Shown: one piece after another, positions 1-42,457 of the stretch | Layout: every line of letters begins with the position of its first letter | Position numbering within the stretch: the stretch's first letter is position 1 | Sequence record: OR805295.1 | Length of the DNA stretch: 64,000 bases | Strand: one strand, 5' to 3' | Program-made: the position numbers and the translations under genes | The notes under the pieces: model-generated | The model's input: only the letters and a program-made list of their open reading frames with translations | Databases searched by the model: none | What the model was told of the DNA's origin: nothing

Positions 1-2
1 TC

Positions 3-215
3 GAGGATGCAGTAAAGTATGCCGTTAGCAACGGCGAACAAGGGCAACCCCTCCCCGCGCCGGCGGCGCAGACCGATGCCCCGGCAACGGCAGAAGCGCA
101 AGCAGAAGCCCCGGCGGCGCAGACCGAGGATGCGCCGGAGACCCCGGCGGCCGAAGCTAAGCCCGCCCGCAAAGGCGGCAGCAAAGGCAGCAGCAAAGGC
201 GGCAGCAAAAAGTAA
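3..215 (+). CDS. 3' end of early protein with Ala/Pro/Glu linker and Lys/Gly/Ser-rich basic tail (5' truncated by window)
   Basis: Frame 3 is open from base 3 to TAA 213-215 and reads EDAVKYAVSNGEQGQPLPAPAAQTDAP...AKPARKGGSKGSSKGGSKK. It ends just before a terminator. More plausible than the listed 19..225 ORF. Confidence 0.75.
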   Translation, partial: EDAVKYAVSNGEQGQPLPAPAAQTDAPATAEAQAEAPAAQTEDAPETPAAEAKPARKGGSKGSSKGGSKK

Positions 216-228
216 GCGCTGCTAACAC

Positions 229-257
229 AGGAAAGGGGCAACTGCCCCTTTCCTTTT
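229..257 (+). terminator. Rho-independent terminator, family AGGAAAGGGGCAACTGCCCCTTTCCTTTT
   Basis: GC stem plus T-run; near-identical copies at 945-976 and 2231-2259. Confidence 0.85.
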
Positions 258-315
258 ATGTCCTAGTTGTAAATGCAAATTAATCTTATTTGCATTTGCA
301 CAAGTCAATCTCCTG

Positions 316-343
316 TTGCATTACTGCGGCAAGATGTTAGTAT
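316..343 (+). promoter_or_regulatory. sigma70-type early promoter
   Basis: TTGCAT-16-TAGTAT, then RBS AGGAG before 384. Confidence 0.7.
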
Positions 344-383
344 GTGCTTGGCAGTAACACATAACTAGCAGGAGCAACAGACA

Positions 384-632
384 ATGGCTAAAGTATTGCA
401 TGTTAACAGCATCGGCAACATCGCCGAAGTGTTTACATCTGTAGACCTCGATAGCGCCTTGTTGCACGCAATCAAGCGCTGTGCAATGATGGGCAAGGTT
501 AATGTTGTTGGTCCCAACGCTCCTGTGTTTGCTAGCCACTACGACGCACTGACAGCGTACGACGTGCAGTGGCGCCTTGTTCCACCAGGCTGCGGCGTTA
601 CTTTGTACGTCATCGCCGAGGACAACAACTAA
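384..632 (+). CDS. hypothetical early protein, 82 aa
   Basis: Promoter and GCAGGAG RBS upstream. Confidence 0.85.
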   Translation: MAKVLHVNSIGNIAEVFTSVDLDSALLHAIKRCAMMGKVNVVGPNAPVFASHYDALTAYDVQWRLVPPGCGVTLYVIAEDNN

Positions 633-643
633 GGAGAGACACA

Positions 644-946
644 ATGAATCTCGTACATCTGTGGATCAACGGGCGTGTTGTGACTGCCCGCAAGGTTGTA
701 AGTAAACACACTGTCCGCAATCCGAACAGTCCGATTGATATCGAGACTATCGACGTTGTTCGACTGCGTCTGCCCCGTGGTGTTCGTGCTAGCAGTTGGG
801 CACTCCGTAAGGCAGTGTACCAGCTCATGGAGCAAAGCTGTAGCTGCTCGAGTGACTGTTGTGGACACTGGTTCGGCGGCGCACGCAAGATCTACATTAA
901 AGGCAGAGACGTCAGTGTCGTTGCCGGGTACCAGCGCAATTACTAA
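644..946 (+). CDS. hypothetical early protein with Cys cluster (CSCSSDCCGH), 100 aa
   Basis: AAGGAG RBS at 631 points to ATG 644 rather than 569; terminator follows. Confidence 0.8.
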   Translation: MNLVHLWINGRVVTARKVVSKHTVRNPNSPIDIETIDVVRLRLPRGVRASSWALRKAVYQLMEQSCSCSSDCCGHWFGGARKIYIKGRDVSVVAGYQRNY

Positions 947-976
947 AGGAAAGGGGCAGTTGCCCCCTTTCCTTTT
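945..976 (+). terminator. Rho-independent terminator
   Basis: AAAGGAAAGGGGCAGTTGCCCCCTTTCCTTTT. Confidence 0.85.
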
Positions 977-1089
977 ATCCATTAATGTGCAAACGCGAAT
1001 TATTCTTATTTGCACAGGACAGTGAGATGCAAACAAGAGGCATTCTTGATGCAGTCGGGTGATAAGAATTGTTCACAAAAAGAAAAAGC

Positions 1090-1117
1090 TTGCGTTATGC
1101 TACACAGGTGCTAGTAT
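1090..1117 (+). promoter_or_regulatory. sigma70-type early promoter
   Basis: TTGCGT-16-TAGTAT with extended TG. Confidence 0.7.
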
Positions 1118-1159
1118 GTGTATTGCAGTACCTATAAACATTAATAGCAGGATAAGAAA

Positions 1160-1480
1160 ATGGTTGACTTTAAAGGTTTTAACTGGGACGCACTAGTCCC
1201 GGAGGACAACGTTTCCACAGTTTCCATTAAAAATCACTACGAGGAACTCCTACAAAGTTTTGTTGACAACGGCATAGACTATGTGTTAGTCCGGCTGTCC
1301 CAGGAACTGCCGCACTACGAGGATTCAGATTATCCCTGCTACAAATTGGTTGACAAGTATGCAGGATGGATAGTAGGCTGGGACTACTACGGATTTGTTG
1401 TGGAACGCATGGACACGCACCTTTTCTTTGACAACAGCACTGCAAAAGGTGTAATGGACTTCCTGGAAGCTAACGGCTAG
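1160..1480 (+). CDS. hypothetical acidic early protein, 106 aa
   Basis: Own promoter, RBS AGCAGGA and terminator. Confidence 0.85.
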   Translation: MVDFKGFNWDALVPEDNVSTVSIKNHYEELLQSFVDNGIDYVLVRLSQELPHYEDSDYPCYKLVDKYAGWIVGWDYYGFVVERMDTHLFFDNSTAKGVMDFLEANG

Positions 1481-1483
1481 CAC

Positions 1484-1514
1484 AAAAAGGAAGGGGCGCA
1501 AGCCCTTTTCTTTT
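1484..1514 (+). terminator. Rho-independent terminator
   Basis: AAAAAGGAAGGGGCGCAAGCCCTTTTCTTTT. Confidence 0.8.
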
Positions 1515-1670
1515 GTCTGCAATTTCTGTGCAAATAAGAACTATTACAGTTGTGGTAAAAGCACAATGCAAATAAGACGCATTCTTGATTAGGCCTGATA
1601 ATAAGTTCTTATTAACAACAAAGAAACTGAATAAGAATAATTCTGAAAAAATAACCCTGCGGCGTAACAC

Positions 1671-1699
1671 AAAGGGCTTGCAAATTGCAAGCCCTTTTT
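1671..1699. terminator. terminator-like hairpin with no gene in front
   Basis: AAAGGGCTTGCA-AAT-TGCAAGCCCTTT, 12-bp stem. Confidence 0.7.
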
Positions 1700-1706
1700 A
1701 ATATGC

Positions 1707-1782
1707 ATTTGTTCTAAGATTAGTTCTTATTTGCAATGATAATATTCCCGCCTTACAAATAAGAACTAATCTTAGAACAAAT
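1707..1782. repeat. perfect 27-bp inverted repeat with 22-bp spacer
   Basis: ATTTGTTCTAAGATTAGTTCTTATTTG (1707-1733) is the exact reverse complement of 1756-1782. Confidence 0.95.
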
Positions 1783-1863
1783 ATTCACTTGATTTTTCTC
1801 CCAATATAGTGTATGTCTATATTAGATAAGATTAAGTCTTGTTTGCTTGTTACACTTTATATG

Positions 1864-1892
1864 TTGCAATGCTAAGGCAATGACAATATTAT
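1864..1892 (+). promoter_or_regulatory. sigma70-type early promoter
   Basis: TTGCAA-17-TATTAT. Confidence 0.65.
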
Positions 1893-1923
1893 ATGTACAG
1901 CAACACAAAACAGGAGATATAAC

Positions 1924-2229
1924 ATGTCAGCAGAATTGAAGCGGTTGTTAGAGATTTTTCCAACCTTTAAATCATTCATTTATGCTGAAGGGGCATATGG
2001 CATTGATGTTTGGAAGGCTACGGGTAGTGTTACTTTGGAACAGGTATTCAATGCTGTTAATGCAGGTAATGCAGAATGGCAATGTAAAGGTGATCCAACA
2101 TGCAGCCTGGAACAAAACAGCATGTATATTTTCATTACTATTCAGGAACCAGACTACACAGGAATGGTTGACATTGATGTTTGTGTAAAGATTACTAACG
2201 GTAATGAAGTAAGTTATCAAATAGCATAA
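1924..2229 (+). CDS. hypothetical early protein, 101 aa
   Basis: CAGGAG RBS, promoter and terminator. Confidence 0.85.
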   Translation: MSAELKRLLEIFPTFKSFIYAEGAYGIDVWKATGSVTLEQVFNAVNAGNAEWQCKGDPTCSLEQNSMYIFITIQEPDYTGMVDIDVCVKITNGNEVSYQIA

Positions 2230-2230
2230 T

Positions 2231-2259
2231 AAAGGAAAGGGGCAACTGCCCTTTTTCTT
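2231..2259 (+). terminator. Rho-independent terminator
   Basis: AAAGGAAAGGGGCAACTGCCCTTTTTC. Confidence 0.8.
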
Positions 2260-2308
2260 ATGACCATTGATGCAAACTATTCTTATTTGCACATCAAAAA
2301 AATATCTA

Positions 2309-2336
2309 TTGAATTCTATTAATATGATGCTATTAT
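2309..2336 (+). promoter_or_regulatory. sigma70-type early promoter
   Basis: TTGAAT-16-TATTAT with extended TG. Confidence 0.6.
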
Positions 2337-2365
2337 ATATAGTGTAATTAACTCGGAGTAAAGTT

Positions 2366-2653
2366 ATGCAACCTCTAAAGCAATTGCCACAAAACTACGC
2401 AATAATCACTCCAACTAGTGTTACTAATTTTAACTGCACCTTTTCTCAAGCCTATTGCAGAATAAAAGCAGAATGCAAAAACGTTTTCTGTTGGGTTCGT
2501 TGGGGTGACCACGGCGTTGCAATGAAGCGCCGAATTGATCCACCGTATGTAGTGTATCGAAACAACGGACGACAACGAAAAGTAGTTCTTGTAAACGTAG
2601 ACAAAGCCCCTGTTAATTGGCAAGACGAACTTAAACAACTATACAAATGGTAA
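2366..2653 (+). CDS. hypothetical early protein, 95 aa
   Basis: GGAG RBS, terminator downstream. Confidence 0.8.
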   Translation: MQPLKQLPQNYAIITPTSVTNFNCTFSQAYCRIKAECKNVFCWVRWGDHGVAMKRRIDPPYVVYRNNGRQRKVVLVNVDKAPVNWQDELKQLYKW

Positions 2654-2655
2654 TT

Positions 2656-2684
2656 AAGAAAAGGGCTATTATAGCCCTTTTCTT
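2656..2684. terminator. Rho-independent terminator
   Basis: AAGAAAAGGGCTA-TTA-TAGCCCTTTTCTT. Confidence 0.85.
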
Positions 2685-2834
2685 ATGACCATTGATGCAA
2701 ACTATTCTTATTTGCACGATCCCGCACTTATAACACAAGTATGTTACAAAAGCAAGAATAAAATTAACTTGACACCTATATGTAGAATATAGCACAATGT
2801 GTTTATAAATTATATTACTACAGGAGCGTTAACC

Positions 2835-3206
2835 ATGTTCAAATGCAAATTGTTTGTAGTAGATCCTGTTTATAACAACCTTTGCTACACTCAACAAATA
2901 TGGCTCGAAAGTGACGTAAATGTGTGTAGCCAAATAAAGCGTATTATTTCTGACGTAGAATTGGCATGCGCAAATAGGATAGTAAATAATCCTCATAGTC
3001 CACTATGCGTTAAATCAGCAGCATTAAAAATGGTTATGGACGGGCGCATTGACATCGAACTCAAAGATGTCAATAGTTACGTTGATCAATATAAAGACAT
3101 TCTTCCTAGCACAAATATTTTGGGTGTTTTTAAACCGACGTTTTTATCTAACTGGAAAGAAGAGTGTGAACTTTATTTCCTTAGTTGCGTTGAAAAAGAC
3201 AATTAA
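2835..3206 (+). CDS. hypothetical protein
   Basis: CAGGAG RBS at 2821 favours ATG 2835 over 2799. Confidence 0.75.
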   Translation: MFKCKLFVVDPVYNNLCYTQQIWLESDVNVCSQIKRIISDVELACANRIVNNPHSPLCVKSAALKMVMDGRIDIELKDVNSYVDQYKDILPSTNILGVFKPTFLSNWKEECELYFLSCVEKDN

Positions 3207-3212
3207 TATAAT

Positions 3213-3500
3213 ATGGAAGATGATTTAAAAAATATTGTTTCGAAGACTATCTTATCTAATAAAATTAAGATAGTCTCTTTACGTACTGTAGTAAAAACTC
3301 AGTATAAAAGAGTAGACTTCCATTATAAGATAGAATGTGAAAATAGTTCTACAAAACGTAATTTGGTATTTGCCCGTATATGCAAACCATTAGAACACAC
3401 ATTAGGTTCAAAACTTGTTTATGTAGATATTGTGCCTATCAAGTTTAAGAAAGATGAAATGCCATCTACTATTCTATCGGTAAGTGTAATGACTAGTTGA
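3213..3500 (+). CDS. hypothetical protein, 95 aa
   Basis: Follows previous gene by 6 nt. Confidence 0.7.
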   Translation: MEDDLKNIVSKTILSNKIKIVSLRTVVKTQYKRVDFHYKIECENSSTKRNLVFARICKPLEHTLGSKLVYVDIVPIKFKKDEMPSTILSVSVMTS

Positions 3501-3592
3501 TATTTGGATTTGATATTTGGAAATATAATAGTAATTCTTATTTGCAATTATAATAAATTCTTGTTTACTTTTAAAATAAAAGCAAATTCTAG

Positions 3593-3621
3593 TTGCATAG
3601 CTAGCGGCAATGTGCTAGTAT
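3593..3621 (+). promoter_or_regulatory. sigma70-type early promoter
   Basis: TTGCAT-17-TAGTAT with extended TG. Confidence 0.75.
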
Positions 3622-3651
3622 ATTAAAAAATAAAGACAGGAGTGTTATTAC

Positions 3652-3834
3652 ATGCAAACCAAAGCAACCGAGTTGGCAGTAGGCGATGTTGTTTTCTACA
3701 ATGGCATGAAAATGACTATCCAGAAAATTTCTAAAGGTCGGTGTGCAATAGATATTACACTAGTAAATACTTTGGCTAAACTCACATCTTATGTGACAGT
3801 CGACTATGACGAAGAATTTGAAGAAGTATTATAA
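3652..3834 (+). CDS. small hypothetical protein, 60 aa, possibly an SH3/KOW-like beta barrel
   Basis: RBS CAGGAG; pattern ELAVGDVVFYNG. Confidence 0.75.
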   Translation: MQTKATELAVGDVVFYNGMKMTIQKISKGRCAIDITLVNTLAKLTSYVTVDYDEEFEEVL

Positions 3835-3850
3835 TGCAGAAATTATAGTC

Positions 3851-3881
3851 ATAAGAAAAGGGGCATTGCCCCTTTTCTTAT
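3851..3881. terminator. bidirectional terminator between convergent genes
   Basis: ATAAGAAAAGGGGCA-T-TGCCCCTTTTCTTAT. Confidence 0.85.
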
Positions 3882-4117
3882 AGTCCCAACAAATGCTTGC
3901 CACTTTTGACTTGCATCATACGTACTTTCTTTTTGCGCATTTGCGTTCTTACGTTCAGGCTGTTGGGACCTTTGAAGCTATACAGTATTTCAGTAGTCCC
4001 GTCTTCATAGTTGCGTACTACATTTGCAACAATTTGACTACCTTCCTGGAACGCTTCGATAAACACGCAGTAATTGAAATTTTCCTTGTTAGCGTTATGT
4101 GCGCGTAGTTGCATCAT
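3878..4117 (-). CDS. hypothetical early protein, 79 aa
   Basis: Minus-strand GCAGGAG RBS and promoter; ends in shared terminator. Confidence 0.8.
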   Translation of the reverse strand: MMQLRAHNANKENFNYCVFIEAFQEGSQIVANVVRNYEDGTTEILYSFKGPNSLNVRTQMRKKKVRMMQVKSGKHLLGL

Positions 4118-4155
4118 TTTCTGTTACTCCTGCGTTGTTTTGCTTTGTTATGTGT

Positions 4156-4183
4156 AGTATACGCTATGCGTGTGCTAATGCAA
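4156..4183 (-). promoter_or_regulatory. sigma70-type early promoter
   Basis: TTGCAT-16-TATACT on minus strand. Confidence 0.75.
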
Positions 4184-4415
4184 GAATTTTCTTCCATTTT
4201 CTTTCAAATAAAATGTTATTAGCATCTATTCTGTTATAACATTTTCTACGACTTCATGTTTTGCAAATAAGAATTAATCGCATTTGCATTCCTACCTATA
4301 TGCCTAAATTTTAGGCAGCCTGGGTGATTGTCTCCCCCGCCCTATTACTGGTCTCTGTATAAAGATAATAGCATATTTGTATCTGCATGCAAGCATTTTT
4401 TGTAGAATTTTCCTC

Positions 4416-4444
4416 TTGACATTCCTTGCTGTAGGCTACATTAT
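4416..4444 (+). promoter_or_regulatory. sigma70-type early promoter
   Basis: TTGACA-17-CATTAT. Confidence 0.65.
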
Positions 4445-4470
4445 GCACACACAGAGCAGGAGATACCATT

Positions 4471-4851
4471 ATGGCACTCATAGCATTAGTAGCAACTGCA
4501 TATGACAAAGAAGGCGATAAGTTCGACTATGTTCGATATCTTAAAGCTCATATCAATTTTGTTTCTGCTCAAGATCAACTGAAAGAATGGATCAAAAACA
4601 AAATTGATGCAAGTATAGCAGAAGTTAAAATCGGTTTACGTGCAGAAATCGAAGTATTGGCCTATTTGGGAAACTATATAAGCCATAGTCAACGGATTAT
4701 TAGTCCCGCCGGGATCATCATGTACATTGTTCTTGATGAGAAGTATGTTAACGAACTTCACGGTCAAATTTCTAATGCAATTGGTTGTGAAGAAAAGAAA
4801 CATGTAATAAAGAAAGAAGAAAACGTCACTTATATTGATTTTAAAAAATAA
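4471..4851 (+). CDS. hypothetical early protein, 126 aa
   Basis: AGCAGGAG RBS and promoter. Confidence 0.85.
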   Translation: MALIALVATAYDKEGDKFDYVRYLKAHINFVSAQDQLKEWIKNKIDASIAEVKIGLRAEIEVLAYLGNYISHSQRIISPAGIIMYIVLDEKYVNELHGQISNAIGCEEKKHVIKKEENVTYIDFKK

Positions 4852-4852
4852 C

Positions 4853-4881
4853 TTGCATTAGCTGTAATGTATATGTATTAT
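4853..4881 (+). promoter_or_regulatory. sigma70-type promoter with no ORF downstream
   Basis: TTGCAT-17-TATTAT with extended TG; predicted start near A4888. Confidence 0.7.
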
Positions 4882-4887
4882 GTACTC

Positions 4888-5044
4888 AAGTTTGCAGCAA
4901 GACGTATTAATTTGTTTTGCTGTTAGTTGTAACTCCTGCTACCAAGTATGTGTTGAGCTAATGCTCCTGACTTGGTTCTTGGTACACTGGTTTGGGTGTA
5001 CCGTTCTTGAGCTGCAAAGGGCTTGCCCGGCGCAGCTTTTTTTT
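4888..5044 (+). ncRNA. candidate structured small RNA, about 155 nt
   Basis: Own promoter; stems 4894-4903/4914-4923, 4942-4947/4970-4975, 4981-4987/4996-5002 and 5010-5015/5032-5037, then 8 T; no credible ORF seen. Confidence 0.65.
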
Positions 5045-5060
5045 GACTAATATTATTCAT

Positions 5061-5090
5061 TTGACAAAAAATAATAATTAAAAATATAAT
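5061..5090 (+). promoter_or_regulatory. sigma70-type promoter
   Basis: TTGACA-18-TATAAT. Confidence 0.7.
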
Positions 5091-5124
5091 AGCTTAGTGT
5101 ATAACTTCCCATATTAGGCTAATT

Positions 5125-5496
5125 ATGAAATTTGTTATTGCTGCTATTGCATTGTCTTTGTCCACACTAGTTTCTGCAGAATCTATTACTGAAGTTGAGA
5201 TAACTAAAGAAACATGCCTTACACTTCTGGAATTATCTAAGATTCATGTTGATATGGTAGTAAATGAACATATGAATGCAATACAAATTGCATCTCATAT
5301 GGATATTGTATCTAATTTATATAAGAATAATAATAGTAAATGGCTTGCGTTCTTGCAGGCTCAAGCAAATATTTCAAAATTAATTGATAACGTATATGAG
5401 TTTTCATCTACTGAAGAAAGAAAGATTATCCCTCTAGCCATATTTAACGGTTGTATGGAAAGAGTTGGTAATACTTTTGAAATATATAAGAAATAA
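5125..5496 (+). CDS. exported protein with Sec signal peptide, 123 aa
   Basis: MKFVIAAIALSLSTLVSA/ES: basic N-terminus, hydrophobic core, VSA cleavage site. Confidence 0.85.
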   Translation: MKFVIAAIALSLSTLVSAESITEVEITKETCLTLLELSKIHVDMVVNEHMNAIQIASHMDIVSNLYKNNNSKWLAFLQAQANISKLIDNVYEFSSTEERKIIPLAIFNGCMERVGNTFEIYKK

Positions 5497-5497
5497 T

Positions 5498-5809
5498 ATG
5501 TATGTATATGTAGTCCATAGAATAGTCAATACAGGCGTTGAGACTAATATTTGCGATATAGAACGTTACGTTACAATTAACGACGTCGGTGCTATATCAA
5601 AGTTTCTTAATTTTAAAGAACATATAGCAGCAAACCCAAACTTATATATACGATTAATTACTACTGGATTTAATACTAAAAAGAACATATTAGAATTAAA
5701 TTTATCCAAAAAAGAATATGTAGTATCAGGTTTTAGAGTTACATCAACTAATATAAATGAATGTATTGAATATTACCTGTGTAGAAGGATATTTAAGTTA
5801 TATGATTGA
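5498..5809 (+). CDS. hypothetical protein
   Basis: ATG 1 nt after previous stop, in the frame of listed ORF 5465..5809. Confidence 0.65.
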   Translation: MYVYVVHRIVNTGVETNICDIERYVTINDVGAISKFLNFKEHIAANPNLYIRLITTGFNTKKNILELNLSKKEYVVSGFRVTSTNINECIEYYLCRRIFKLYD

Positions 5810-5927
5810 ATTTATATTAAAATCCCTTTTATTAACTTCAGTTGTCAGTGTTGGCATACTACTGATATTCATTATTATTTCATTGTTAATGTTTGGCTTA
5901 GCACCGATAGTTCCATTCCTTATTTAA
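5802..5927 (+). CDS. 41-aa hydrophobic membrane peptide (below ORF-track cutoff)
   Basis: MIEFILKSLLLTSVVSVGILLIFIIISLLMFGLAPIVPFLI; overlaps previous stop. Confidence 0.65.
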   Translation: MIEFILKSLLLTSVVSVGILLIFIIISLLMFGLAPIVPFLI

Positions 5928-6141
5928 TTTTAATTATTTGCAAGCAAATGCAAATGCGAATAATTCTTATTATCCAGCAGGCTACTGTACCTAATCTTCG
6001 TTAGATAAAATCTATTAGAATCTACAAAGTCCATTAAAACGTTCAATTGTACATGGTGGCCAGATCTGCATATACTACACACATGAAGCAAGCAAACAGC
6101 GCTTCATAAACAAACCCAAATACAGCTAGGAGTTCCAAATC

Positions 6142-6603
6142 ATGTCCAAAGCAACCGTTACCGTCGAGCAATCCGCAATCAAACTGGTTCGCCGCAACCT
6201 GGAAGGGCACCGGCAAGCCCTGTTGCTGAACGGCGTCGAAGTAGGCAGCAGCGAAGCGTTCTACAAGACCAAAACCCAGCGCACCTGGTCGGCGAAGATC
6301 GACGCCAACATCAACGGCAAGGACATCGTCCTCGAACAGAAAGGCGTGTTCAGCGCGATCCGGATCGCCCGGGCGATGGAACAAGCAATCCTGTTCATCC
6401 TGACCGACGGCAAAGAAGGCGCCGAGATGCCGGCCAGCACGCTGAGCAAGGAAGAGCAAGCCCACAACCTGGTCAAGGCAGTAGTCCAGGTCGCCGACCA
6501 TGCAGTTCAGTCCGGCGGCGCCGGCAACGGCGAAACCGAGGCAGCAGCCCCGGCGAAGAAAGGCAGCTCGAAGAAGCGCAAAGAAGCCCAGCCGGAAGCA
6601 TAA
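6142..6603 (+). CDS. GC-rich early protein with acidic/basic C-terminal tail, 153 aa
   Basis: AGGAG RBS, TATACT -10 at 6071, terminator downstream, GC3-rich codons. Confidence 0.9.
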   Translation: MSKATVTVEQSAIKLVRRNLEGHRQALLLNGVEVGSSEAFYKTKTQRTWSAKIDANINGKDIVLEQKGVFSAIRIARAMEQAILFILTDGKEGAEMPASTLSKEEQAHNLVKAVVQVADHAVQSGGAGNGETEAAAPAKKGSSKKRKEAQPEA

Positions 6604-6616
6604 TCCGGACTACACC

Positions 6617-6642
6617 GAGAAAGCACCGAAAGGTGCTTTCTC
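6617..6642 (+). terminator. terminator-like hairpin
   Basis: GAGAAAGCACC-GAAA-GGTGCTTTCTC, 11-bp stem with GNRA loop. Confidence 0.75.
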
Positions 6643-6759
6643 TATGACAGTTAATAGCAAATATTCTTATTTGCATCTAACCTGAAATAATAATAACTCT
6701 TATTTACAAATCATACTGAATACTGTATTTTACACATTAAACATTGTAGGTAATATAAA

Positions 6760-7248
6760 TTGAATATATTTGTGACTGACACAAATCCTTATGTATGTGC
6801 CAAACATCATTGTGATATTCATCTAAGAAAGATGATAGTAGAAACAGCACAATTGTTAAGCACCACTCATTATATAATAAACGGATATACTCCTGCATAT
6901 AAACCTACTCATAAAAATCACCCATGTACCGTTTGGATTAGAGAAAGTTCATATAACTATAAATGGACTTATGAACTTCTTACAAGTCTTATAAATGAAT
7001 TTGAATATAGATTTGACAAACAACATGCAACTAAAATTCACCTTTCGTCATTAAAAACTATACCAAAACTCCCTAATATAGAAAGAACAGAGTTTGTCTT
7101 AGTTATGCCAGACGAATTTAAAACAGGTAATGTAACACATTCATATCAGTTATATTTAAATAACAAATTTAAAGAATGGGCATCGAGATCTAACAGACCC
7201 ATTTATGCTACATATACAAAGACACCTAAACCATATTTTATTAGTTGA
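6760..7248 (+). CDS. denV: pyrimidine dimer DNA glycosylase / endonuclease V-like family protein
   Basis: MNIF...KMIVETAQLLST and YKPTHKNHPCTVW motifs typical of the phage DenV-like family; TTG start. Confidence 0.8.
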   Translation: MNIFVTDTNPYVCAKHHCDIHLRKMIVETAQLLSTTHYIINGYTPAYKPTHKNHPCTVWIRESSYNYKWTYELLTSLINEFEYRFDKQHATKIHLSSLKTIPKLPNIERTEFVLVMPDEFKTGNVTHSYQLYLNNKFKEWASRSNRPIYATYTKTPKPYFIS

Positions 7249-7320
7249 AAAATAATAAAAATGATTGACACGTACATAAGATCATATTATGCTGTATAAA
7301 ACAGCAAGGAGTAGATATAC

Positions 7321-7554
7321 ATGTACCGCAAACTGAATACAAATCCACGCCCAATGCCAAAAACAAAGGCAATTCCAACTAAATTTGTCATTCAGTACAC
7401 TGCACGGAATAAAGCAACAGAAAGTTTGTTCAAAAAAAGAACTATTACATTACATGCGTTTGGGCGTCTCGATGCACAGACACTCCTATCAAAACATATA
7501 CGAAAAAATAATTTGGAATTAGGTGTAATTATTGATTTCGGTGAAACAGTTTAG
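7321..7554 (+). CDS. basic hypothetical early protein, 77 aa
   Basis: TTGACA-17-TATGCT at 7265-7293, AAGGAG RBS and terminator. Confidence 0.8.
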   Translation: MYRKLNTNPRPMPKTKAIPTKFVIQYTARNKATESLFKKRTITLHAFGRLDAQTLLSKHIRKNNLELGVIIDFGETV

Positions 7555-7563
7555 TTAGTGACT

Positions 7564-7594
7564 AAAGAAAGGGGATTAATTCCCCTTTCTTTTT
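7564..7594. terminator. Rho-independent terminator
   Basis: AAAGAAAGGGGA-TTAAT-TCCCCTTTCTTTTT. Confidence 0.85.
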
Positions 7595-7819
7595 ATTAAG
7601 TCAAATACAAATGCAAATACAAATTATTCTTATTTGCACAGATCAGACCGGCAATCCCAATAACATTACTAACTTAGATGAAATGGCTTACTACAATGAA
7701 CCCTGAATACTGAAAAGTGCCTAAGAAGTAATTCCAGTTGTATCTAAAACACTATGTGTTATTATACATATAGTGTTTTTATTTCTTATAATTATATTCA
7801 ATAATAATGGTAAAAATAT

Positions 7820-8143
7820 ATGATTGAAGTAATTAAATGCATTATATGTAATGAATCACCCCGTCCGGGCGCATTTGCAGCATTTATTACTCAAATGCGT
7901 CAAGTAGTAAAACCTCATGCAACTATAACTAGTTGGAATATTCTGCCCGGCATTAATGATGATCCAACTAGTTATATTCATGCATTCAGTATAAAATCAA
8001 AAACAGCATACGATATTAATCAAGCGATTACCTTATTACTAATGTCATTATATAATGCTAGTGAATATAAGACTAGCTACACACCTACTTCGTTTAAAGA
8101 CTATGAATCTACAATAAAGCATTTATCTAAGATCAAACAATAA
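7820..8143 (+). CDS. hypothetical protein, 107 aa, N-terminal CxxC
   Basis: ORF track; weak RBS. Confidence 0.6.
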   Translation: MIEVIKCIICNESPRPGAFAAFITQMRQVVKPHATITSWNILPGINDDPTSYIHAFSIKSKTAYDINQAITLLLMSLYNASEYKTSYTPTSFKDYESTIKHLSKIKQ

Positions 8144-8207
8144 CCAGTTGCATATTTACAAATATACATGTATGCTAAAACATATACACAATCATGAGTA
8201 CATTATC

Positions 8208-8363
8208 ATGACAAAAGAAATTGCTTTTACTGAAGGAGTAAAAGCAGGCACTCAAATAAAAGAAGGCAAAGCTATCCTAACTGACTTCTTTCGATATTTC
8301 AATTCCTTACCAACTAATATGAGAACTTCTTTTATCATCGGTATCAAAACCGGTAGAAACTAA
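8208..8363 (+). CDS. small hypothetical protein (start uncertain, 8148 or 8208)
   Basis: In frame with listed ORF 8148..8363. Confidence 0.5.
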   Translation: MTKEIAFTEGVKAGTQIKEGKAILTDFFRYFNSLPTNMRTSFIIGIKTGRN

Positions 8364-8544
8364 TAAGCATATTAATTTTCATATTTTGGTAGACAAGGGT
8401 ACTCACTGGATGCATACTGTACACATACAGAACATACGGAGTACAAAGGGATGGATGCGCGTAGTCTGCTTAGCCTTATCGAAGACCTTCCTATAGCTGT
8501 CACGTCTGTTTTGACACCCTCTACCTCGCTTGCAAATAAAAAGG

Positions 8545-8573
8545 TTGACGCAGACTAGCATCGGACACATAAT
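8545..8573 (+). promoter_or_regulatory. sigma70-type early promoter
   Basis: TTGACG-17-CATAAT. Confidence 0.75.
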
Positions 8574-8611
8574 AACTATAACACAACGAAACAGCCCCGG
8601 AGGGCAAGCAA

Positions 8612-8917
8612 ATGGAAACCATCGGCCAAATCATCCTGCAACAACTGGGCGGCAATAAATTCATCGCAATGACTGGGGCTAAGGATTTCGTCCGCTCCGA
8701 TGCCGGCAAGTGGCTGCAATTCAAACTGCCTTCCAACTTCGCCAAAAATAAAATCAATTGCGTGAAAATCACCCTGACCCCTGCGGATTTGTACGATGTC
8801 GAATATCTGTACATTCGCGGGATGAACGTCAAAGAAGTGTCGGTTTCCCGTAGCATTTATGCCGACATGCTGCAAAAGGATTTCACCGAAAACACCGGGC
8901 TTGATACTCATCTGTAA
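8612..8917 (+). CDS. conserved phage hypothetical protein (ILQQLGGNKFIAMTGAK type), 101 aa
   Basis: GGAGG RBS; I recognise the N-terminal motif from many phages but know no function for it. Confidence 0.9.
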   Translation: METIGQIILQQLGGNKFIAMTGAKDFVRSDAGKWLQFKLPSNFAKNKINCVKITLTPADLYDVEYLYIRGMNVKEVSVSRSIYADMLQKDFTENTGLDTHL

Positions 8918-8932
8918 AAGTTTCGAAAAGGG

Positions 8933-8961
8933 TTGCATCATATTCCGACATCCCTTATACT
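8933..8961 (+). promoter_or_regulatory. sigma70-type early promoter
   Basis: TTGCAT-17-TATACT. Confidence 0.8.
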
Positions 8962-9000
8962 ATGCCCATACACAACGAAACAGACCCGGAGGGCAAAACT

Positions 9001-9150
9001 ATGTGCAACATCCAATGCATGAACAGCAAAGCCGGCGAGTCCTACGCATGGATTTGGAGCGATAGCGATAGCGATATCTGCTACGAAGTTATCTTCCGGC
9101 ATGGCCAAGTCCTCACCCAGGTTTGGCTCGGCTATGATATTGTAGCCTAA
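9001..9150 (+). CDS. 49-aa acidic early protein
   Basis: GGAGG RBS at 8988 gives ATG 9001; terminator follows. Confidence 0.75.
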   Translation: MCNIQCMNSKAGESYAWIWSDSDSDICYEVIFRHGQVLTQVWLGYDIVA

Positions 9151-9158
9151 CACCAACT

Positions 9159-9183
9159 AAAGCCCCGTCCCAGGCGGGGCTTT
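9159..9183. terminator. terminator-like hairpin
   Basis: AAAGCCCCG...CGGGGCTTT. Confidence 0.75.
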
Positions 9184-9199
9184 ACCGAAGGAAAAGATC

Positions 9200-9409
9200 A
9201 TGATCGAACAACTGAAAGACATGCTCGTAGCGCAACGCATGCGCATGAACCAACTCGAAAAACTGCGCTACACCGGACGGGTCGCTAGCGAGTTGCATGC
9301 CCACGCCAGGGAATTGTGTGAAGCCTTGGAACTGGCAATTGCAAATGCCCAGTGCCTGGAAATGCGCAAGCCCGAAGAAGCCACCCTGCACGCCCTGTTC
9401 GCACAATAA
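9200..9409 (+). CDS. hypothetical helical protein, 69 aa
   Basis: AAGGA RBS, GC3-rich codons. Confidence 0.75.
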   Translation: MIEQLKDMLVAQRMRMNQLEKLRYTGRVASELHAHARELCEALELAIANAQCLEMRKPEEATLHALFAQ

Positions 9410-9442
9410 CCCACCACGCACAACCCGACAAGGAAACCAACC

Positions 9443-9934
9443 ATGAGCACCACAATCCCCGATACGATTCATCCGAGTGACCTTCCCGAAATCGGCCAGC
9501 CTCTGGCTGATGGAACCTTCTTTGCCCGCCAATGGCTCAATGGCAAGGAATACGCATACGTCGATCTCGGCAAAAGCGCCGAGTTCACTGAAGAATGGGG
9601 CGAGTATGGGCAGGATGTGAACGGCGCCGCCAGCTACCGAGACGGAGCTTCGAACACGATCGCTATGGCTGAAGCTGGCAGCCCGATTGCCAAGCAAGCT
9701 ATGGAGATCGGAGAAGGCGTATTCATTCCTTCTGTTCTGGAACTGGCTCTTCTGTTCTCTGCCAAGCAAGCAGACGAGCTGTCTGGTTTCGCAGATCGCT
9801 GGTACTGGTCGAGTTCGCAGTACTCCGCCTGCGGCGCCTTCCGCATGCACTTCGGCGACGGCGAGGCTAGTGTCGCCATCAAGAGCAGCGCCTGGTTGGT
9901 CCGCCCCGTTCGCAAGATTCTCATCCTTCAGTAA
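9443..9934 (+). CDS. DUF1566 / Lcl C-terminal domain (C-type-lectin-like) protein
   Basis: GxxNT..M, FIPSxxEL, WYWSSSQYS and terminal VRPVRK motifs match the Pseudomonas-prophage DUF1566 family. Confidence 0.85.
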   Translation: MSTTIPDTIHPSDLPEIGQPLADGTFFARQWLNGKEYAYVDLGKSAEFTEEWGEYGQDVNGAASYRDGASNTIAMAEAGSPIAKQAMEIGEGVFIPSVLELALLFSAKQADELSGFADRWYWSSSQYSACGAFRMHFGDGEASVAIKSSAWLVRPVRKILILQ

Positions 9935-10011
9935 TATAGCCCCGGAGATAACACGATGAACCTGCACCTCTCCAAGCATTGTCTGCGCCAACGCGGGACC
10001 AAGGAACAATC

Positions 10012-10260
10012 ATGAGCATTGCAAGCTACCTCTTGTTGTCCACCATTGTCTTCAACAACAACACCTACGCTCGTTCGACGACAGTGGACACCATTGTGGT
10101 TCGTGACCTTAGCAAGGAAGACTGCGAGGCGCTCAAGCGTGAGCGCGAAGCAGTTGTGAAGAACATCCGGGCAAGGAACTTCGGTAGCTCTGGCGATACG
10201 AGTAGTATCACTGTGGGCTTTTCCAAACATAGCTGCACAAAGATGGAGGGTACGAAATAA
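10012..10260 (+). CDS. hypothetical protein with hydrophobic N-terminus
   Basis: AAGGA RBS before ATG 10012. Confidence 0.7.
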   Translation: MSIASYLLLSTIVFNNNTYARSTTVDTIVVRDLSKEDCEALKREREAVVKNIRARNFGSSGDTSSITVGFSKHSCTKMEGTK

Positions 10261-10333
10261 CTCAACTGGCCACGGCGAGCAAACATTGCCTGGCAGGTGC
10301 TAGCTGAACGCCTGGCGGAACAATAAATAAAAG

Positions 10334-10362
10334 TTGACGTAGCCGAGCGAAGGGCGCATAAT
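10334..10362 (+). promoter_or_regulatory. sigma70-type early promoter
   Basis: TTGACG-17-CATAAT, same type as 8545. Confidence 0.75.
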
Positions 10363-10401
10363 AATTACAACACAACACAGCAAGCCCCGGAGGGCGCAAC
10401 C

Positions 10402-10602
10402 ATGACCCAGATCGTAGATGTCAAGCAAATTGCAATTGATGCAAACCGTCGCCCGGCCTACAATGCGGTCATGGTGCGCTGGTTGATGCAGGAAGCTGAA
10501 TTGCACCGTAGCTGCGGACGCACCGCTACCCTGTTCTGCATCGTTCGCAACCGCCCTGACGGCACACAGCGCCAGCTTGTGCAGCTTGTGGCTAGCGAGT
10601 AA
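10402..10602 (+). CDS. hypothetical early protein, 66 aa
   Basis: GGAGG RBS and promoter. Confidence 0.8.
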   Translation: MTQIVDVKQIAIDANRRPAYNAVMVRWLMQEAELHRSCGRTATLFCIVRNRPDGTQRQLVQLVASE

Positions 10603-10632
10603 CCTCAATCACCCTACGCCCAGGAGGCCGTC

Positions 10633-10797
10633 ATGAATGCTGCACTGGCCAGACTTCAAAACGAACGTTGCATGTTACTTCGCCGGATGCTTTGCAGCAA
10701 ATGGCACGGATTCTGTTTTGCAGGTCACCCCTGGGCAGAACAAGCCCGCAATCTGCACGACGAATCCAAGTGCATCCGAGAACATTACAGTAAGTAA
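10633..10797 (+). CDS. 54-aa Cys/His-rich protein (not in ORF track)
   Basis: CAGGAGG RBS; MNAALARLQNERCMLLRRMLCSKWHGFCFAGHPWAEQARNLHDESKCIREHYSK. The listed 10637..10936 ORF begins in the wrong frame. Confidence 0.75.
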   Translation: MNAALARLQNERCMLLRRMLCSKWHGFCFAGHPWAEQARNLHDESKCIREHYSK

Positions 10798-10831
10798 TCC
10801 AATCCCACTGGATCTTACTGAGGATAAGATA

Positions 10832-10936
10832 ATGACCTACGCAGAACTAATAAAGAAACTACATAACATAGAAGCTAGTCATTATCTTTCCAATAATGAA
10901 GTTAATTTTCAAAACACAGGCAAGCAGGAGAATTAA
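10832..10936 (+). CDS. 34-aa peptide
   Basis: GAGGA RBS before ATG 10832. Confidence 0.5.
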   Translation: MTYAELIKKLHNIEASHYLSNNEVNFQNTGKQEN

Positions 10937-10937
10937 A

Positions 10938-11234
10938 ATGAATTGTGAACATTTTTTCCTCAGTGCAGTAAAAGAACTTCTGTCCCTGTACCACATTAAG
11001 AGTACTATTCAACAGTCTTCTGATAACCTCGAAGAATTGGTAGTAGTTATTACCGATACTGCTTTTGGTACTATCAGATATGTTGGAAATAACACTGGAT
11101 CGGTTATGTGTTATACTATGGGCGGTAATTACCCGTTGTATGATACTGAGTGTTATTCCAACCGAACTATGATAGATTGTGTTATGTTGATATCAGTTTG
11201 GTATTCAATGTTTCCGGCATTTGATAATAAGTAA
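10938..11234 (+). CDS. hypothetical protein
   Basis: AGCAGGAG RBS favours ATG 10938. Confidence 0.75.
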   Translation: MNCEHFFLSAVKELLSLYHIKSTIQQSSDNLEELVVVITDTAFGTIRYVGNNTGSVMCYTMGGNYPLYDTECYSNRTMIDCVMLISVWYSMFPAFDNK

Positions 11235-11490
11235 TATAATGGTTGTTCTATATAGTGTATGATGTTAGTTGTATACTATATAGAATAATTCTATTAACTG
11301 GGAGGGATTAATAAAAATATTTTCTTGACAATAGCAGGTATAGGATAATTCTATTATACTGAAAATTGTTATAGAAAAATATAGTTGACAAATTTTGAAA
11401 GTGATGAATTCCAACACCGGGTGGCTGTAAGCTGAGACGGTTAACATTCGGTGGCTGGTGGATTGTTACGCGGGTAGATTTTGAAATTCA

Positions 11491-11725
11491 CCGTCTATAG
11501 GTTCGTTCATAACACTTTCACTTACAAGTCACTTTCATTTATAAGTCATTTCCGTCTATAGGTTCACTTATAACACATATAAGTTACTTCCATTCGCTCA
11601 TAAGTCACTTTCGTTTATAAGCCACTTTCTCACTTTCATTTATAGGTCACATTCAATACTGTTACTACACACATTCAAACCTATAAGTCATTTCACTGTA
11701 TTGTACTGTACTGTACTGTACCGTA
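11491..11725 (+). repeat. non-coding array of degenerate ATAAGTCACTTTC-like repeats plus (CTGTA)6
   Basis: Copies near 11524, 11541, 11579, 11600, 11617, 11642 and 11683; CCGTCTATAGGTTC at 11491 and 11552; pentamer tandem at 11696-11725. Confidence 0.85.
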
Positions 11726-11831
11726 TCATATATACTTCATACAATTTTCTTCTTTATCATGCTGCTAGTAAACAATCTATGTTATTATGTGTAGAAATGT
11801 TGTATAGTGTATTATAGTAAGTATAGTATGA

Positions 11832-12065
11832 TTGCTATACATTATTCCTAATCTCATATTGTTGTTTAACTTTCCAAATCTGTCTCGGCTGTTCTACTTT
11901 ATGTCTCATAGTTACGTATTTTCTTTATCTAGGCGTATACGTAATAAACAAAGTAACTTTATAAAAAATTACTATAACTCATTAAAATGGGTATACGGTG
12001 AAAGAGACATTAATAGATATATTACACGATACACACTGAATAGAGCATTATATAGAGGCCATTAA
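11832..12065 (+). CDS. AT-rich hypothetical mini-ORF
   Basis: ORF track, part of head-to-tail run, no clear RBS. Confidence 0.4.
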   Translation: MLYIIPNLILLFNFPNLSRLFYFMSHSYVFSLSRRIRNKQSNFIKNYYNSLKWVYGERDINRYITRYTLNRALYRGH

Positions 12066-21888: not shown

Positions 21889-22014
21889 TTAACCCCTTTT
21901 ATTTAATAATTCTTTATTTGTTTTCAGATCTACAATTTTAACGTGATCGAGGGCGTGACCGAGCACGTCCTCGTCTGGTTTTTTATTGTTACTGTTATCT
22001 TTCTTATCATCCAT
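21889..22014 (-). CDS. 41-aa mini-protein resembling N-terminus of downstream gene (not in ORF track)
   Basis: MDDKKDNSNNKKPDEDVLGHALDHVKIVDLKTNKELLNKRG; directly behind late promoter at 22020. Confidence 0.75.
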   Translation of the reverse strand: MDDKKDNSNNKKPDEDVLGHALDHVKIVDLKTNKELLNKRG

Positions 22015-22019
22015 ATCGA

Positions 22020-22027
22020 TATTTATC
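22020..22027 (-). promoter_or_regulatory. late promoter GATAAATA
   Basis: Variant of T4 TATAAATA; recurs before many structural genes. Confidence 0.7.
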
Positions 22028-22038
22028 TGTGTTTTAAA

Positions 22039-42158: not shown

Positions 42159-42457
42159 TAAATTATACCTTCTAACGATTCTATAGTGGGTGCATATATA
42201 GATTTTCCTGCAGTAAAATCGTATATAGGATCGATTAATTCATCCATATTTCTTACCGCAAATACCCACCAAAGTTCTTCTGTTCCGTATAAATCATACG
42301 AAAGCAAATCAGGTCTTTGATCATATTTAGGTGCAATAACAATTAATTCATCAGTTATATTAGGTAATATTTTCCTAGGAACCCATAAATCTAAATAAAA
42401 ATCTTTTATAGGTGTATCATAATATCGGCTTTTCGTAGAAGAAATGTTATTTGCCAT
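42158..42457 (-). CDS. gp53: baseplate wedge subunit, gp53/LysM-like
   Basis: YDQRPDLLSYDLYGTEELWWVF. Confidence 0.85.
   Translation of the reverse strand: MANNISSTKSRYYDTPIKDFYLDLWVPRKILPNITDELIVIAPKYDQRPDLLSYDLYGTEELWWVFAVRNMDELIDPIYDFTAGKSIYAPTIESLEGII

Follow-up and report, generated by a model that had tools for sequence, protein, structure and literature searches.

A structured 3' untranslated region in the early region of Pseudomonas phage Paride: a candidate source of a processed anti-Shine-Dalgarno small RNA

We analysed positions 4853-5044 of a 64,000-nucleotide stretch of DNA (the window; sequence record OR805295.1), where the original prediction had placed the gene of a small RNA (sRNA) displaying an anti-Shine-Dalgarno (anti-SD) seed. 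The segment is non-coding, strongly structured and transcribed on the + strand, and it constitutes the 3' untranslated region (3'UTR) of an early gene of unassigned function located at 4471-4851 (+ strand; 126 aa; Paride_0386, which corresponds to gp095 of phage PA5oct). The predicted structure, non-coding nature and accessible linker were found, whereas a separate gene that has a promoter of its own and begins near 4888 was not supported: the only sharp 5' boundary lies at 4925/4926, and the RNA thus resembles a product processed from the 3'UTR, with the seed at its 5' end. The RNA species itself quite probably exists, and we tentatively favour the interpretation that it is a 3'UTR-derived, processed small RNA directed against ribosome-binding sites (RBSs) and acting on its own and other early mRNAs. 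This interpretation gains some strength because the accumulating RNA carries the seed at its 5' end and because the complementarity is specific to leaders of early genes.

Over bases 4400-5500, the window matches Pseudomonas phage Paride (OR805295.1), a PA5oct-like jumbo phage, with 100% identity, and it shares 97.5-98.9% identity with ten other PA5oct-like jumbo phages (genus Wroclawvirus). A window position x corresponds to position x + 186,000 of the Paride record. The counterpart of the locus in PA5oct is found at about 32,668-32,865, within a 39-kb terminal repeat that is packed with small early genes of unassigned function; most of these lie on the + strand, and every one has a promoter and a terminator of its own. 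PA5oct requires the RNA polymerase of its host, and its early transcription proceeds almost solely from the + strand of the terminal repeat (PMC7318152).

Transcription of the element and the 5' end of the accumulating RNA

The RNA data were public RNA-seq runs from a 2020 study, four of which (X1, X4, X25 and X26) were aligned to 4350-5550. They consist of assembled contigs (k = 31) with depths given as contig means, and the results described here were obtained among the contigs listed (361 further contigs exist). X1, X4 and X26 carry exactly the private alleles of PA5oct (5031 C>A, 5053 T>A and an extra T after 5105) and are therefore PA5oct infections; X25 represents a different PA5oct-like strain.

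The element is transcribed together with the upstream gene, the junction between the two being spanned by a contig in all four runs. The source of this transcript is likely the sigma-70-type promoter of the upstream gene at 4416-4444 (+ strand; TTGACA, 17 nt, CATTAT; 10 of 12 matches in the promoter scan); in the RNA data, contigs extend from the gene into the element without a gap. Contigs covering 4350-5228, 4663-5019, 4584-4955 and 4856-4954 run unbroken across the promoter and start that had been proposed for the sRNA. A strong 5' end at about 4888 would break such contigs, and since none is broken, there appears to be no independent start at this position. The transcript of about 155 nt expected from 4888 was accordingly not recovered, as neither a contig break nor a depth step occurs near 4888 in any of the four runs among the contigs listed.

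The only sharp 5' boundary is found at 4925/4926, i.e. 2-3 nt before the seed and directly 3' of the first hairpin. The low-depth contigs end at 4955 in X25 and at 4954 in X26, which means that their last 31-mers start at 4925 and 4924, and hence that the abundant molecules begin at 4926 or 4925. From this boundary the depth rises 70- to 190-fold in X25 (from about 320 to 22,000-60,000) and 4-fold in X26, and the X25 depth of the RNA exceeds that of either flank by a factor of 70-190. Contigs that represent error variants of the abundant species have their first base at 4926 and 4930. The depth over 4883-4923 is lower than that downstream, and hairpin 1 in X26 shows an RNA depth below that of both neighbours. 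On the basis of the contig breaks and depth steps in X25 and X26, positions 4925-4926 (+ strand) are regarded as the presumptive 5' end or processing site of the accumulating RNA. A primary start at 4925/4926 was also considered and rejected, as no plausible -10 or -35 element lies at the right distance. As no promoter-like site fits 4926, co-transcription from 4416-4444 with subsequent endonucleolytic release is the most economical interpretation. Around the putative cut the sequence reads UUA/GUU, with U at +2 and +3, which matches the preference of RNase E only in part.

At the other end, a 10- to 40-fold loss of depth from about 5020 to 5087 in X4, X25 and X26 indicates that the intrinsic terminator at 5009-5044 (+ strand), which consists of an interrupted stem followed by U8 in the predicted fold, works. 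The low-depth contigs resume at 4986-4993, adapter-joined ends are located at 5019 and 5022, and the apparent 3' ends fall at 5015-5022. At either adapter junction, the + strand falls on the side of read 2, and the libraries of the laboratory concerned are of the TruSeq Stranded type (PMC7318152, referring to PMC4933390); the RNA is therefore of + sense. It is probable that the boundary at 5015-5022 reflects priming failure in the GC-rich terminator hairpin and that the real 3' end lies in the U-tract. In a random-primed library, an insert's 5' end corresponds to a genuine end of the RNA, whereas its 3' end marks merely where priming occurred.

Two chimeric contigs of X26 were also seen. In the first (depth about 1970), 21 nt of another early leader (TGTAGTTGTACATAAAACAAC) are fused to window position 4456 onward; the junction is a shared 9-mer, GCAGGAGAT, and the donor is the leader of a gene at window position -3411 (record position about 182,589). 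This fusion could represent strand transfer by reverse transcriptase at the 5' end of the mRNA or a recombinant sub-population of paralogous cassettes. In the second, 25 foreign nt (AAATCATAATAAAAACAAAGCACGC) directly precede 4941, the last base of the seed. A chimera between the RNA and a target was considered and dropped, as this string occurs neither anywhere in the Paride genome nor in positions 1-50,000 of PA5oct; it may be of host origin, a PA5oct-specific insert or an artefact.

The proposed promoter

The original prediction assigned a promoter to 4853-4881 (+ strand). Its parts are present, i.e. TTGCAT (4853-4858), a 17-nt spacer ending in TG, and TATTAT (4876-4881), whereas a promoter function is not supported. 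The candidate matches the consensus at 8 of 12 positions in addition to the TG, with only three of six matches to TTGACA in the -35 element, and it was not picked up by the promoter consensus scan. The scan itself performed at chance level (41 sites versus 36.8 in shuffled DNA), and a relaxed pattern (TTGNNN, a 16- to 18-nt spacer ending in TG, TANNNT) occurs 16 times in the window versus 15.0 +/- 3.7 times in shuffles. With both the scan and the relaxed pattern at chance, the candidate promoter is no evidence for anything. Two of 36 columns of the candidate region are variable, the -35 element included, where the change A4857G is tolerated in phage Callisto.

These results bear on the possibility that the segment encodes an independent primary sRNA of about 155 nt, with its own extended -10 promoter at 4853-4881, a start at about 4888 and the seed as an internal linker. 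TG-TATTAT would make a reasonable extended -10 element, and the 157-nt fold starting at 4888 is stable with an open linker. In view of the poor -35 element and its tolerated change, the chance-level patterns, the contigs that cross 4888 in all four runs and a depth over 4883-4923 that is below the downstream depth rather than equal to it, we consider a primary sigma-70-dependent sRNA gene to be quite unlikely.

Predicted structure of the element

The four helices of the original prediction recur in the predicted fold of 4888-5044, at 4894-4923, 4941-4976, 4981-5002 and 5009-5038. The fold energy is -55.6 kcal/mol, compared with -41.5 +/- 3.5 kcal/mol for dinucleotide shuffles (z = -4.0), and the same helices are retained when sub-fragments are folded. 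The element is also a GC island (45-49%, versus 34% in the window and 29-34% in the flanking genes). Hairpin 1 (4894-4923, + strand) has an 11-bp stem and an 8-nt loop and lies upstream of the presumptive cleavage site. It is followed by the linker TGTAACTCCTGCTA at 4928-4941, which is present as predicted, along with the second CTCCTG at 4964-4969 and the T8 run at 5037-5044. As RNA, this linker (+ strand; UGUAACUCCUGCUA) is the anti-SD seed; it is unpaired in every fold, with a probability of being unpaired of 0.71 in the predicted ensemble and of 0.75 for its CUCCUGC core. The second CUCCUG is contained in hairpin 2 (4941-4976, + strand), where it is partly to mostly paired (probability unpaired, 0.36). 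Hairpin 3 (4981-5002, + strand) consists of eight perfect pairs and is flanked by a single-stranded GUUCUUG repeat (4975-4981 and 5003-5009). The succession of hairpin 3, GUUCUU, the stem at 5009-5038 and U8 has the layout of an Hfq-binding module, the U-tail itself being absent from the contigs.

No member of a known RNA family was identified. A search of the whole window against Rfam 15 gave no match at the gathering threshold, and at E < 10 a single chance match to a miRNA was obtained near the locus (5031-5097; 14.8 bits versus a threshold of 90). The scan for tRNA and tmRNA genes returned nothing. An interpretation of 4943-5019 (77 nt) as tRNA-like or as a substrate of RNase P was considered and rejected, as this piece forms two hairpins and no cloverleaf and was negative with ARAGORN.

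Complementarity to early leaders

All of the complementarities named in the original prediction are present. The best predicted target in trans is the leader of the gene at 384-632 (366-379, + strand; TAGCAGGAGCAACA), which pairs at 12 of 14 positions overall with an energy of -20.6 kcal/mol (rank 1 of 132 leaders) and contains a contiguous 9-nt complement, TAGCAGGAG, at 366-374. Further predicted targets are the leader of the minus-strand gene at 3878-4117 (4122-4135, - strand; 11 of 14 positions; -18.2 kcal/mol, rank 4), that of the gene at 10938-11234 (10923-10930, + strand; AGCAGGAG) and that of the gene at 1160-1480 (1145-1152, + strand; TAGCAGGA). The string AGCAGGAG is also found at 4455-4462, in the leader of the element's own gene, where the RBS (4455-4466, + strand; AGCAGGAGAUAC) is complementary to 4929-4940 at 11 of 12 positions. 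In order of duplex energy, gene 384 (-20.6 kcal/mol) is followed by a gene at window position -5600, gene 4471 (-18.7 kcal/mol), the minus-strand gene 3878-4117 and the gene at -3411; early leaders, including that of the own gene, account for six of the ten best duplexes.

The excess was evaluated with leaders derived from the open reading frames (ORFs) of the whole Paride genome, 84 in the terminal-repeat region and 259 elsewhere. The controls were 1000 seeds obtained from the linker (4921-4945) by shuffling the flanks with CUCCU kept in place, because any CUCCU pairs with any AGGAG site. At least eight contiguous complementary nucleotides were found in 7 of the 84 early leaders versus 1.57 +/- 1.45 in the controls (p = 0.006), and in 4 of the 259 leaders elsewhere in the genome versus 5.6 +/- 3.6 (p = 0.67), i.e. 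without any excess. The 100-kb version of this contiguous-match test gave p = 0.017. The enrichment of early-leader complementarity is thus real but modest. It arises because early leaders favour a C before AGGAG, which is present in 14 of 19 early leaders versus 11 of 38 elsewhere; GCAGGAG occurs in six early leaders. The seed is open, conserved and provided with complementary leaders, although its conservation carries little weight given the low divergence of the genomes.

Early-gene leaders (window 1-12000; Paride record 158186-197265) are CA-rich, and several share longer strings such as AACAACGCAGGAG. Pairing with the 3' end of 16S rRNA does not explain the RBS flavour of the early genes, which may serve to enhance translation, to bind Hfq/Crc or as the motif targeted by the RNA described here.

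The seed is also predicted to pair within its own mRNA. When 4451-5044 was folded, the SD region (4455-4462 and 4464-4466) paired with 4933-4940 and 4929-4931, respectively, with a probability of 0.98, a value to be read with the caution that long-range fold predictions in a translated mRNA are unreliable. With a shuffled linker, the SD region still paired with the 3' region at a mean probability of 0.57, probably via the second CUCCUG or the CU-rich shuffled linker itself.

The RNA may alternatively have other targets, silencing host mRNAs with AGGAG sites or titrating a protein or the 30S subunit (Hfq, S1 or a decoy function). It appears to be abundant and stable and is structured, with U-rich spacing, two CUCCUG motifs and a repeated GUUCUUG spacer, and PA5oct progressively takes over host expression (PMC7318152). 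The GGA or CA-rich protein-binding motifs of known Pseudomonas sponges were not seen in the sequence of the element, the RNA has no Rfam match, and the enrichment described above is specific to the phage's own early leaders, all of which make such targets unlikely.

Conservation

Among nine aligned genomes, 6 of the 157 columns of the element are variable (3.8%), and none of the 17 columns of the linker (4924-4940) is. The corresponding values are 3.4% for the upstream gene, 8.6% for the downstream gene and 7.6-11% for neighbouring intergenic DNA. The only change within a stem is G4904A in phage Deifobo, which converts a G.U pair of hairpin 1 into A-U and thus keeps the pair. All other changes are in loops or spacers, including T4954C (two phages) in the internal loop of hairpin 2 and C5031A in the internal loop of the terminator; hairpin 3 is invariant. 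The six variable columns in these nine genomes include one such one-sided compatible change and no double compensatory change.

Homologues outside this group were not detected. A blastn search of 50,697 phage records returned only 11 genomes, all at least 97% identical, and no homologue was found in IMG/VR (searched by protein and with two DNA patterns) or in GTDB genomes. JGI metagenomes gave no match to a 22-mer, and the 120 matches to a 15-mer were all due to chance, with at most 18 nt shared. Within the 287-kb Paride genome, blastn-short and a covariance model recovered only the locus itself. The reverse complement of the linker resembles an early leader (GCAGGAGTTACA versus GCAGGAGTAACA at 4122-4133), with neither a start codon nor a minus-strand promoter alongside; the idea that the segment is an inverted remnant of another cassette leader is neither supported nor excluded by the paralogue search.

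The annotated ORF Paride_0387

The original prediction stated that the segment contains no credible ORF. An ATG ORF of 56 aa does exist at 4880-5050 (+ strand) and is annotated as the hypothetical protein Paride_0387, but we judge it to be non-coding, in keeping with the substance of that statement. The ORF is annotated in 5 of the 11 genomes (Paride, Ettore, Deifobo, PAC2 and Cassandra) and unannotated in PA5oct, MIJ3, Callisto, phi30-2 and phi30-3, the PA5oct annotation having been curated with RNA-seq data. No Shine-Dalgarno sequence precedes it, and the start codon shares bases with the -10-like hexamer. The stop codon is lost or shifted in six of nine genomes, the annotated length being 168, 171 or 195 nt, and a T-run indel shifts the C-terminus in Ettore. 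The four substitutions inside the ORF comprise three nonsynonymous changes and one synonymous change, and the product has no match in PHROG. Apart from the ATG and the five annotations, these sequence features argue that Paride_0387 is not a gene, and it is highly improbable that the element functions by encoding this protein. Even if the segment were only a structured 3'UTR, an over-called ORF in five genome records would be corrected.

Proposed mode of action

In the model that we propose, in which the regulatory effect, the nuclease, the involvement of Hfq and the true 3' end are presumed, an early transcript from the promoter of gene 4471-4851 would stop at the terminator at 5009-5044, with the segment as its structured 3' part. 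An endonucleolytic cut at about 4925/4926, just 3' of hairpin 1, would yield a stable RNA of roughly 95-120 nt, and hairpin 1 would stay on the upstream mRNA as a 3' cap. The first 16 nt of the released RNA would constitute the single-stranded anti-SD seed, GUUGUAACUCCUGCUA, followed by two hairpins, U-rich spacers (GUUCUUG twice) and the terminator with U8, which together would form a typical Hfq-binding 3' module. Before cleavage, the seed would fold back on the RBS of its own mRNA; after cleavage, its partners in trans would be the (G)CAGGAG-type sites that distinguish some of the early genes in the terminal repeat. Either way, binding of the 30S subunit would be blocked, and the synthesis of early proteins would be lowered as the RNA accumulates.

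Several observations weigh against such a regulatory RNA. In X1 and X4, the element does not exceed the upstream gene in abundance, and an adapter-joined 5' end at 4943 in X26 would leave an RNA without the seed. The RNA evidence consists of contigs rather than reads, with ends inferred from k-mer breaks; the apparent 3' ends at 5015-5022 lie inside the terminator hairpin, and their explanation by random-primed cDNA is an assumption. Lood et al. inspected these data and called no non-coding RNA (ncRNA) at the locus. The duplex-energy enrichment is not significant (top-10 mean p = 0.08), the contiguous-match test was run after the matches had been noticed, and an anti-SD match of 8-11 nt is generic, so that (G)CAGGAG could exist for unrelated reasons. 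As all copies are at least 97% identical and none is found outside the 11 genomes, no covariation test is possible.

The main alternative, possible if somewhat doubtful, is that the segment is a passive 3'UTR, which ends transcription of the gene-4471 cassette, insulates the strong promoter at 5061-5090 and protects the mRNA from 3' exonucleases. The abundant fragment would then be a nuclease-resistant decay intermediate, and CUCCU would pair with RBSs generically. Besides the expression levels in X1 and X4, the duplex energies and the lack of a published ncRNA call in PA5oct, this explanation agrees with the co-transcription with the upstream gene, the absence of an independent start and the working terminator, and stable structured fragments often accumulate. 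It accounts less well for the extent of the segment (190 nt, with three helices beyond the terminator), since terminators in this region are typically single hairpins directly after the stop codon. Neither would it predict an invariant linker where 8-11% of the columns of neighbouring intergenic DNA are variable, an excess of contiguous complementarity restricted to the early region, or a sharp 5' end exactly 2 nt before the seed. A processed anti-RBS RNA is the interpretation that we retain, with the reservations given above.

A broader version of this interpretation is that the jumbo phage tags a subset of its immediate-early genes with a private (G)CAGGAG RBS and uses the anti-RBS RNA from an mRNA tail as a self-timed, RNA-only shut-off. 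This idea is speculative and, in our estimation, rather unlikely to hold in full. Such a shut-off might cooperate with the S21 homologue of the phage (see below).

Regulatory RNAs of virulent phages are almost unexplored. Only four ncRNAs are on record for the PA5oct-like phages, a group to which Paride, known for killing dormant P. aeruginosa, belongs, and the present locus is not one of them; no mention of it was found in the literature searched. If the interpretation is true, the RNA would offer a handle for controlling phage gene expression, and the biogenesis of 3'UTR-derived sRNAs would be seen to operate in lytic phages. A class-wide, self-directed early shut-off would be new, if shown.

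Neighbouring genes and other features

The product of the upstream gene, Paride_0386, has no match in PHROG, and its homologues are confined to PA5oct-like phages in a search of a 5.8-billion-protein set. Downstream of the element, a perfect consensus promoter (TTGACA, 18 nt, TATAAT) at 5061-5090 drives the gene at 5125-5496, which is the most variable gene in the neighbourhood (8.6% variable columns). Its product carries an N-terminal Sec-type signal peptide (MKFVIAAIALSLSTLVSA/ES) and has a weak PHROG match, its function being unassigned.

Annotations differ upstream of gene 4471. In Paride, 3893-4108 (+ strand) is annotated as Paride_0384, and in PA5oct the overlapping ORF at 3878-4117 (- strand) is annotated as gp094; the latter is preceded by a strong leader, AACGCAGGAG. 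Annotations of the Paride type call many tiny ORFs (528 features versus 462 in PA5oct) and probably over-call them.

Two features of the Paride record outside the locus are also mentioned here. A homologue of ribosomal protein S21 is annotated as Paride_0054 (record 42244-42450, outside the window). S21 adjoins the anti-SD of 16S rRNA, and Paride may also reprogramme translation initiation at the protein level via this homologue. A repeat_region labelled 'CRISPR' is located at record 158126-158490, at most about 60 bp from the equivalent of the start of the PA5oct terminal repeat; a tandem repeat at the end of the genome is a likelier explanation for this region than a CRISPR array.

Comparison with known systems

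Four ncRNAs have been described in PA5oct, namely ncRNA001-004 (8263-8498, 21951-22401, 103065-103368 and 246116-246734; PMC7318152). They belong to the same phage group as the present RNA, and two of them are highly transcribed from the terminal repeat; all four were found as transcribed regions without an ORF. The Paride locus is none of the four and has no sequence or structural similarity to them, ncRNA001 and ncRNA002 having been compared with the element with a negative result. In ncRNA001 (Paride window position about -19,386), which is very abundant as published, ACCUCCUAU lies 8-16 nt from the annotated start and represents a 7-nt match to the core of the 16S anti-SD. A promoter-like site (TTTACA, 18 nt, TATACT) is found about 30 nt upstream of ncRNA001, which abuts the next gene, gp037, and so may be a long 5'UTR.

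Abundant intergenic RNAs of about 100 nt and unassigned function, sRNA1 and sRNA2, are produced by the lytic P. aeruginosa phage PAK_P3; they are late, lie near tRNA genes, and one of them contains a motif resembling a tRNA T-loop (PMC4933390). The Paride RNA is likewise derived from a lytic phage of P. aeruginosa and appears to be abundant and about 100 nt long, but it is early, originates from a 3'UTR and carries an anti-SD. With PrrF1/PrrF2 and other sRNAs with CU-rich seeds it shares a pyrimidine-rich seed that would cover RBSs and a proposed action in trans. It differs from PrrF1/PrrF2 in architecture, shows no sequence similarity to them and has no match to PrrF or any other family in Rfam.

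The proposed logic, in which an early product silences early mRNAs at their RBSs, is that of the RegB endoribonuclease of phage T4, an early product that inactivates early mRNAs at the GGAG within the RBS. The T4 enzyme is a protein nuclease, whereas an antisense RNA is proposed for Paride, and no sequence relationship exists. In the icaR mRNA of Staphylococcus aureus, a UCCCCUG motif in the 3'UTR pairs with the mRNA's own Shine-Dalgarno sequence. The Paride transcript resembles icaR in having a CU-rich anti-SD in a long 3'UTR that is complementary to its own SD, as reflected by the high predicted pairing probability given above; the organism and the sequence are different, and in Paride the 3' part is seemingly released and matches several other leaders.

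Close parallels to the proposed pathway are offered by the enterobacterial 3'UTR-derived sRNAs that are processed by RNase E and dependent on Hfq, such as CpxQ, SroC, NarS, SdhX and MicL. Unlike these, the Paride RNA comes from a virulent jumbo phage, its anti-SD seed would address a class of RBSs rather than one regulon, and its apparent 3' end in the RNA-seq data lies inside the terminator. As in the enterobacterial sRNAs, it is co-transcribed with an upstream ORF and shares the intrinsic terminator of that ORF; an internal cut would place the seed at the new 5' end, and the RNA contains hairpins, U-rich spacers and a predicted poly-U tail.

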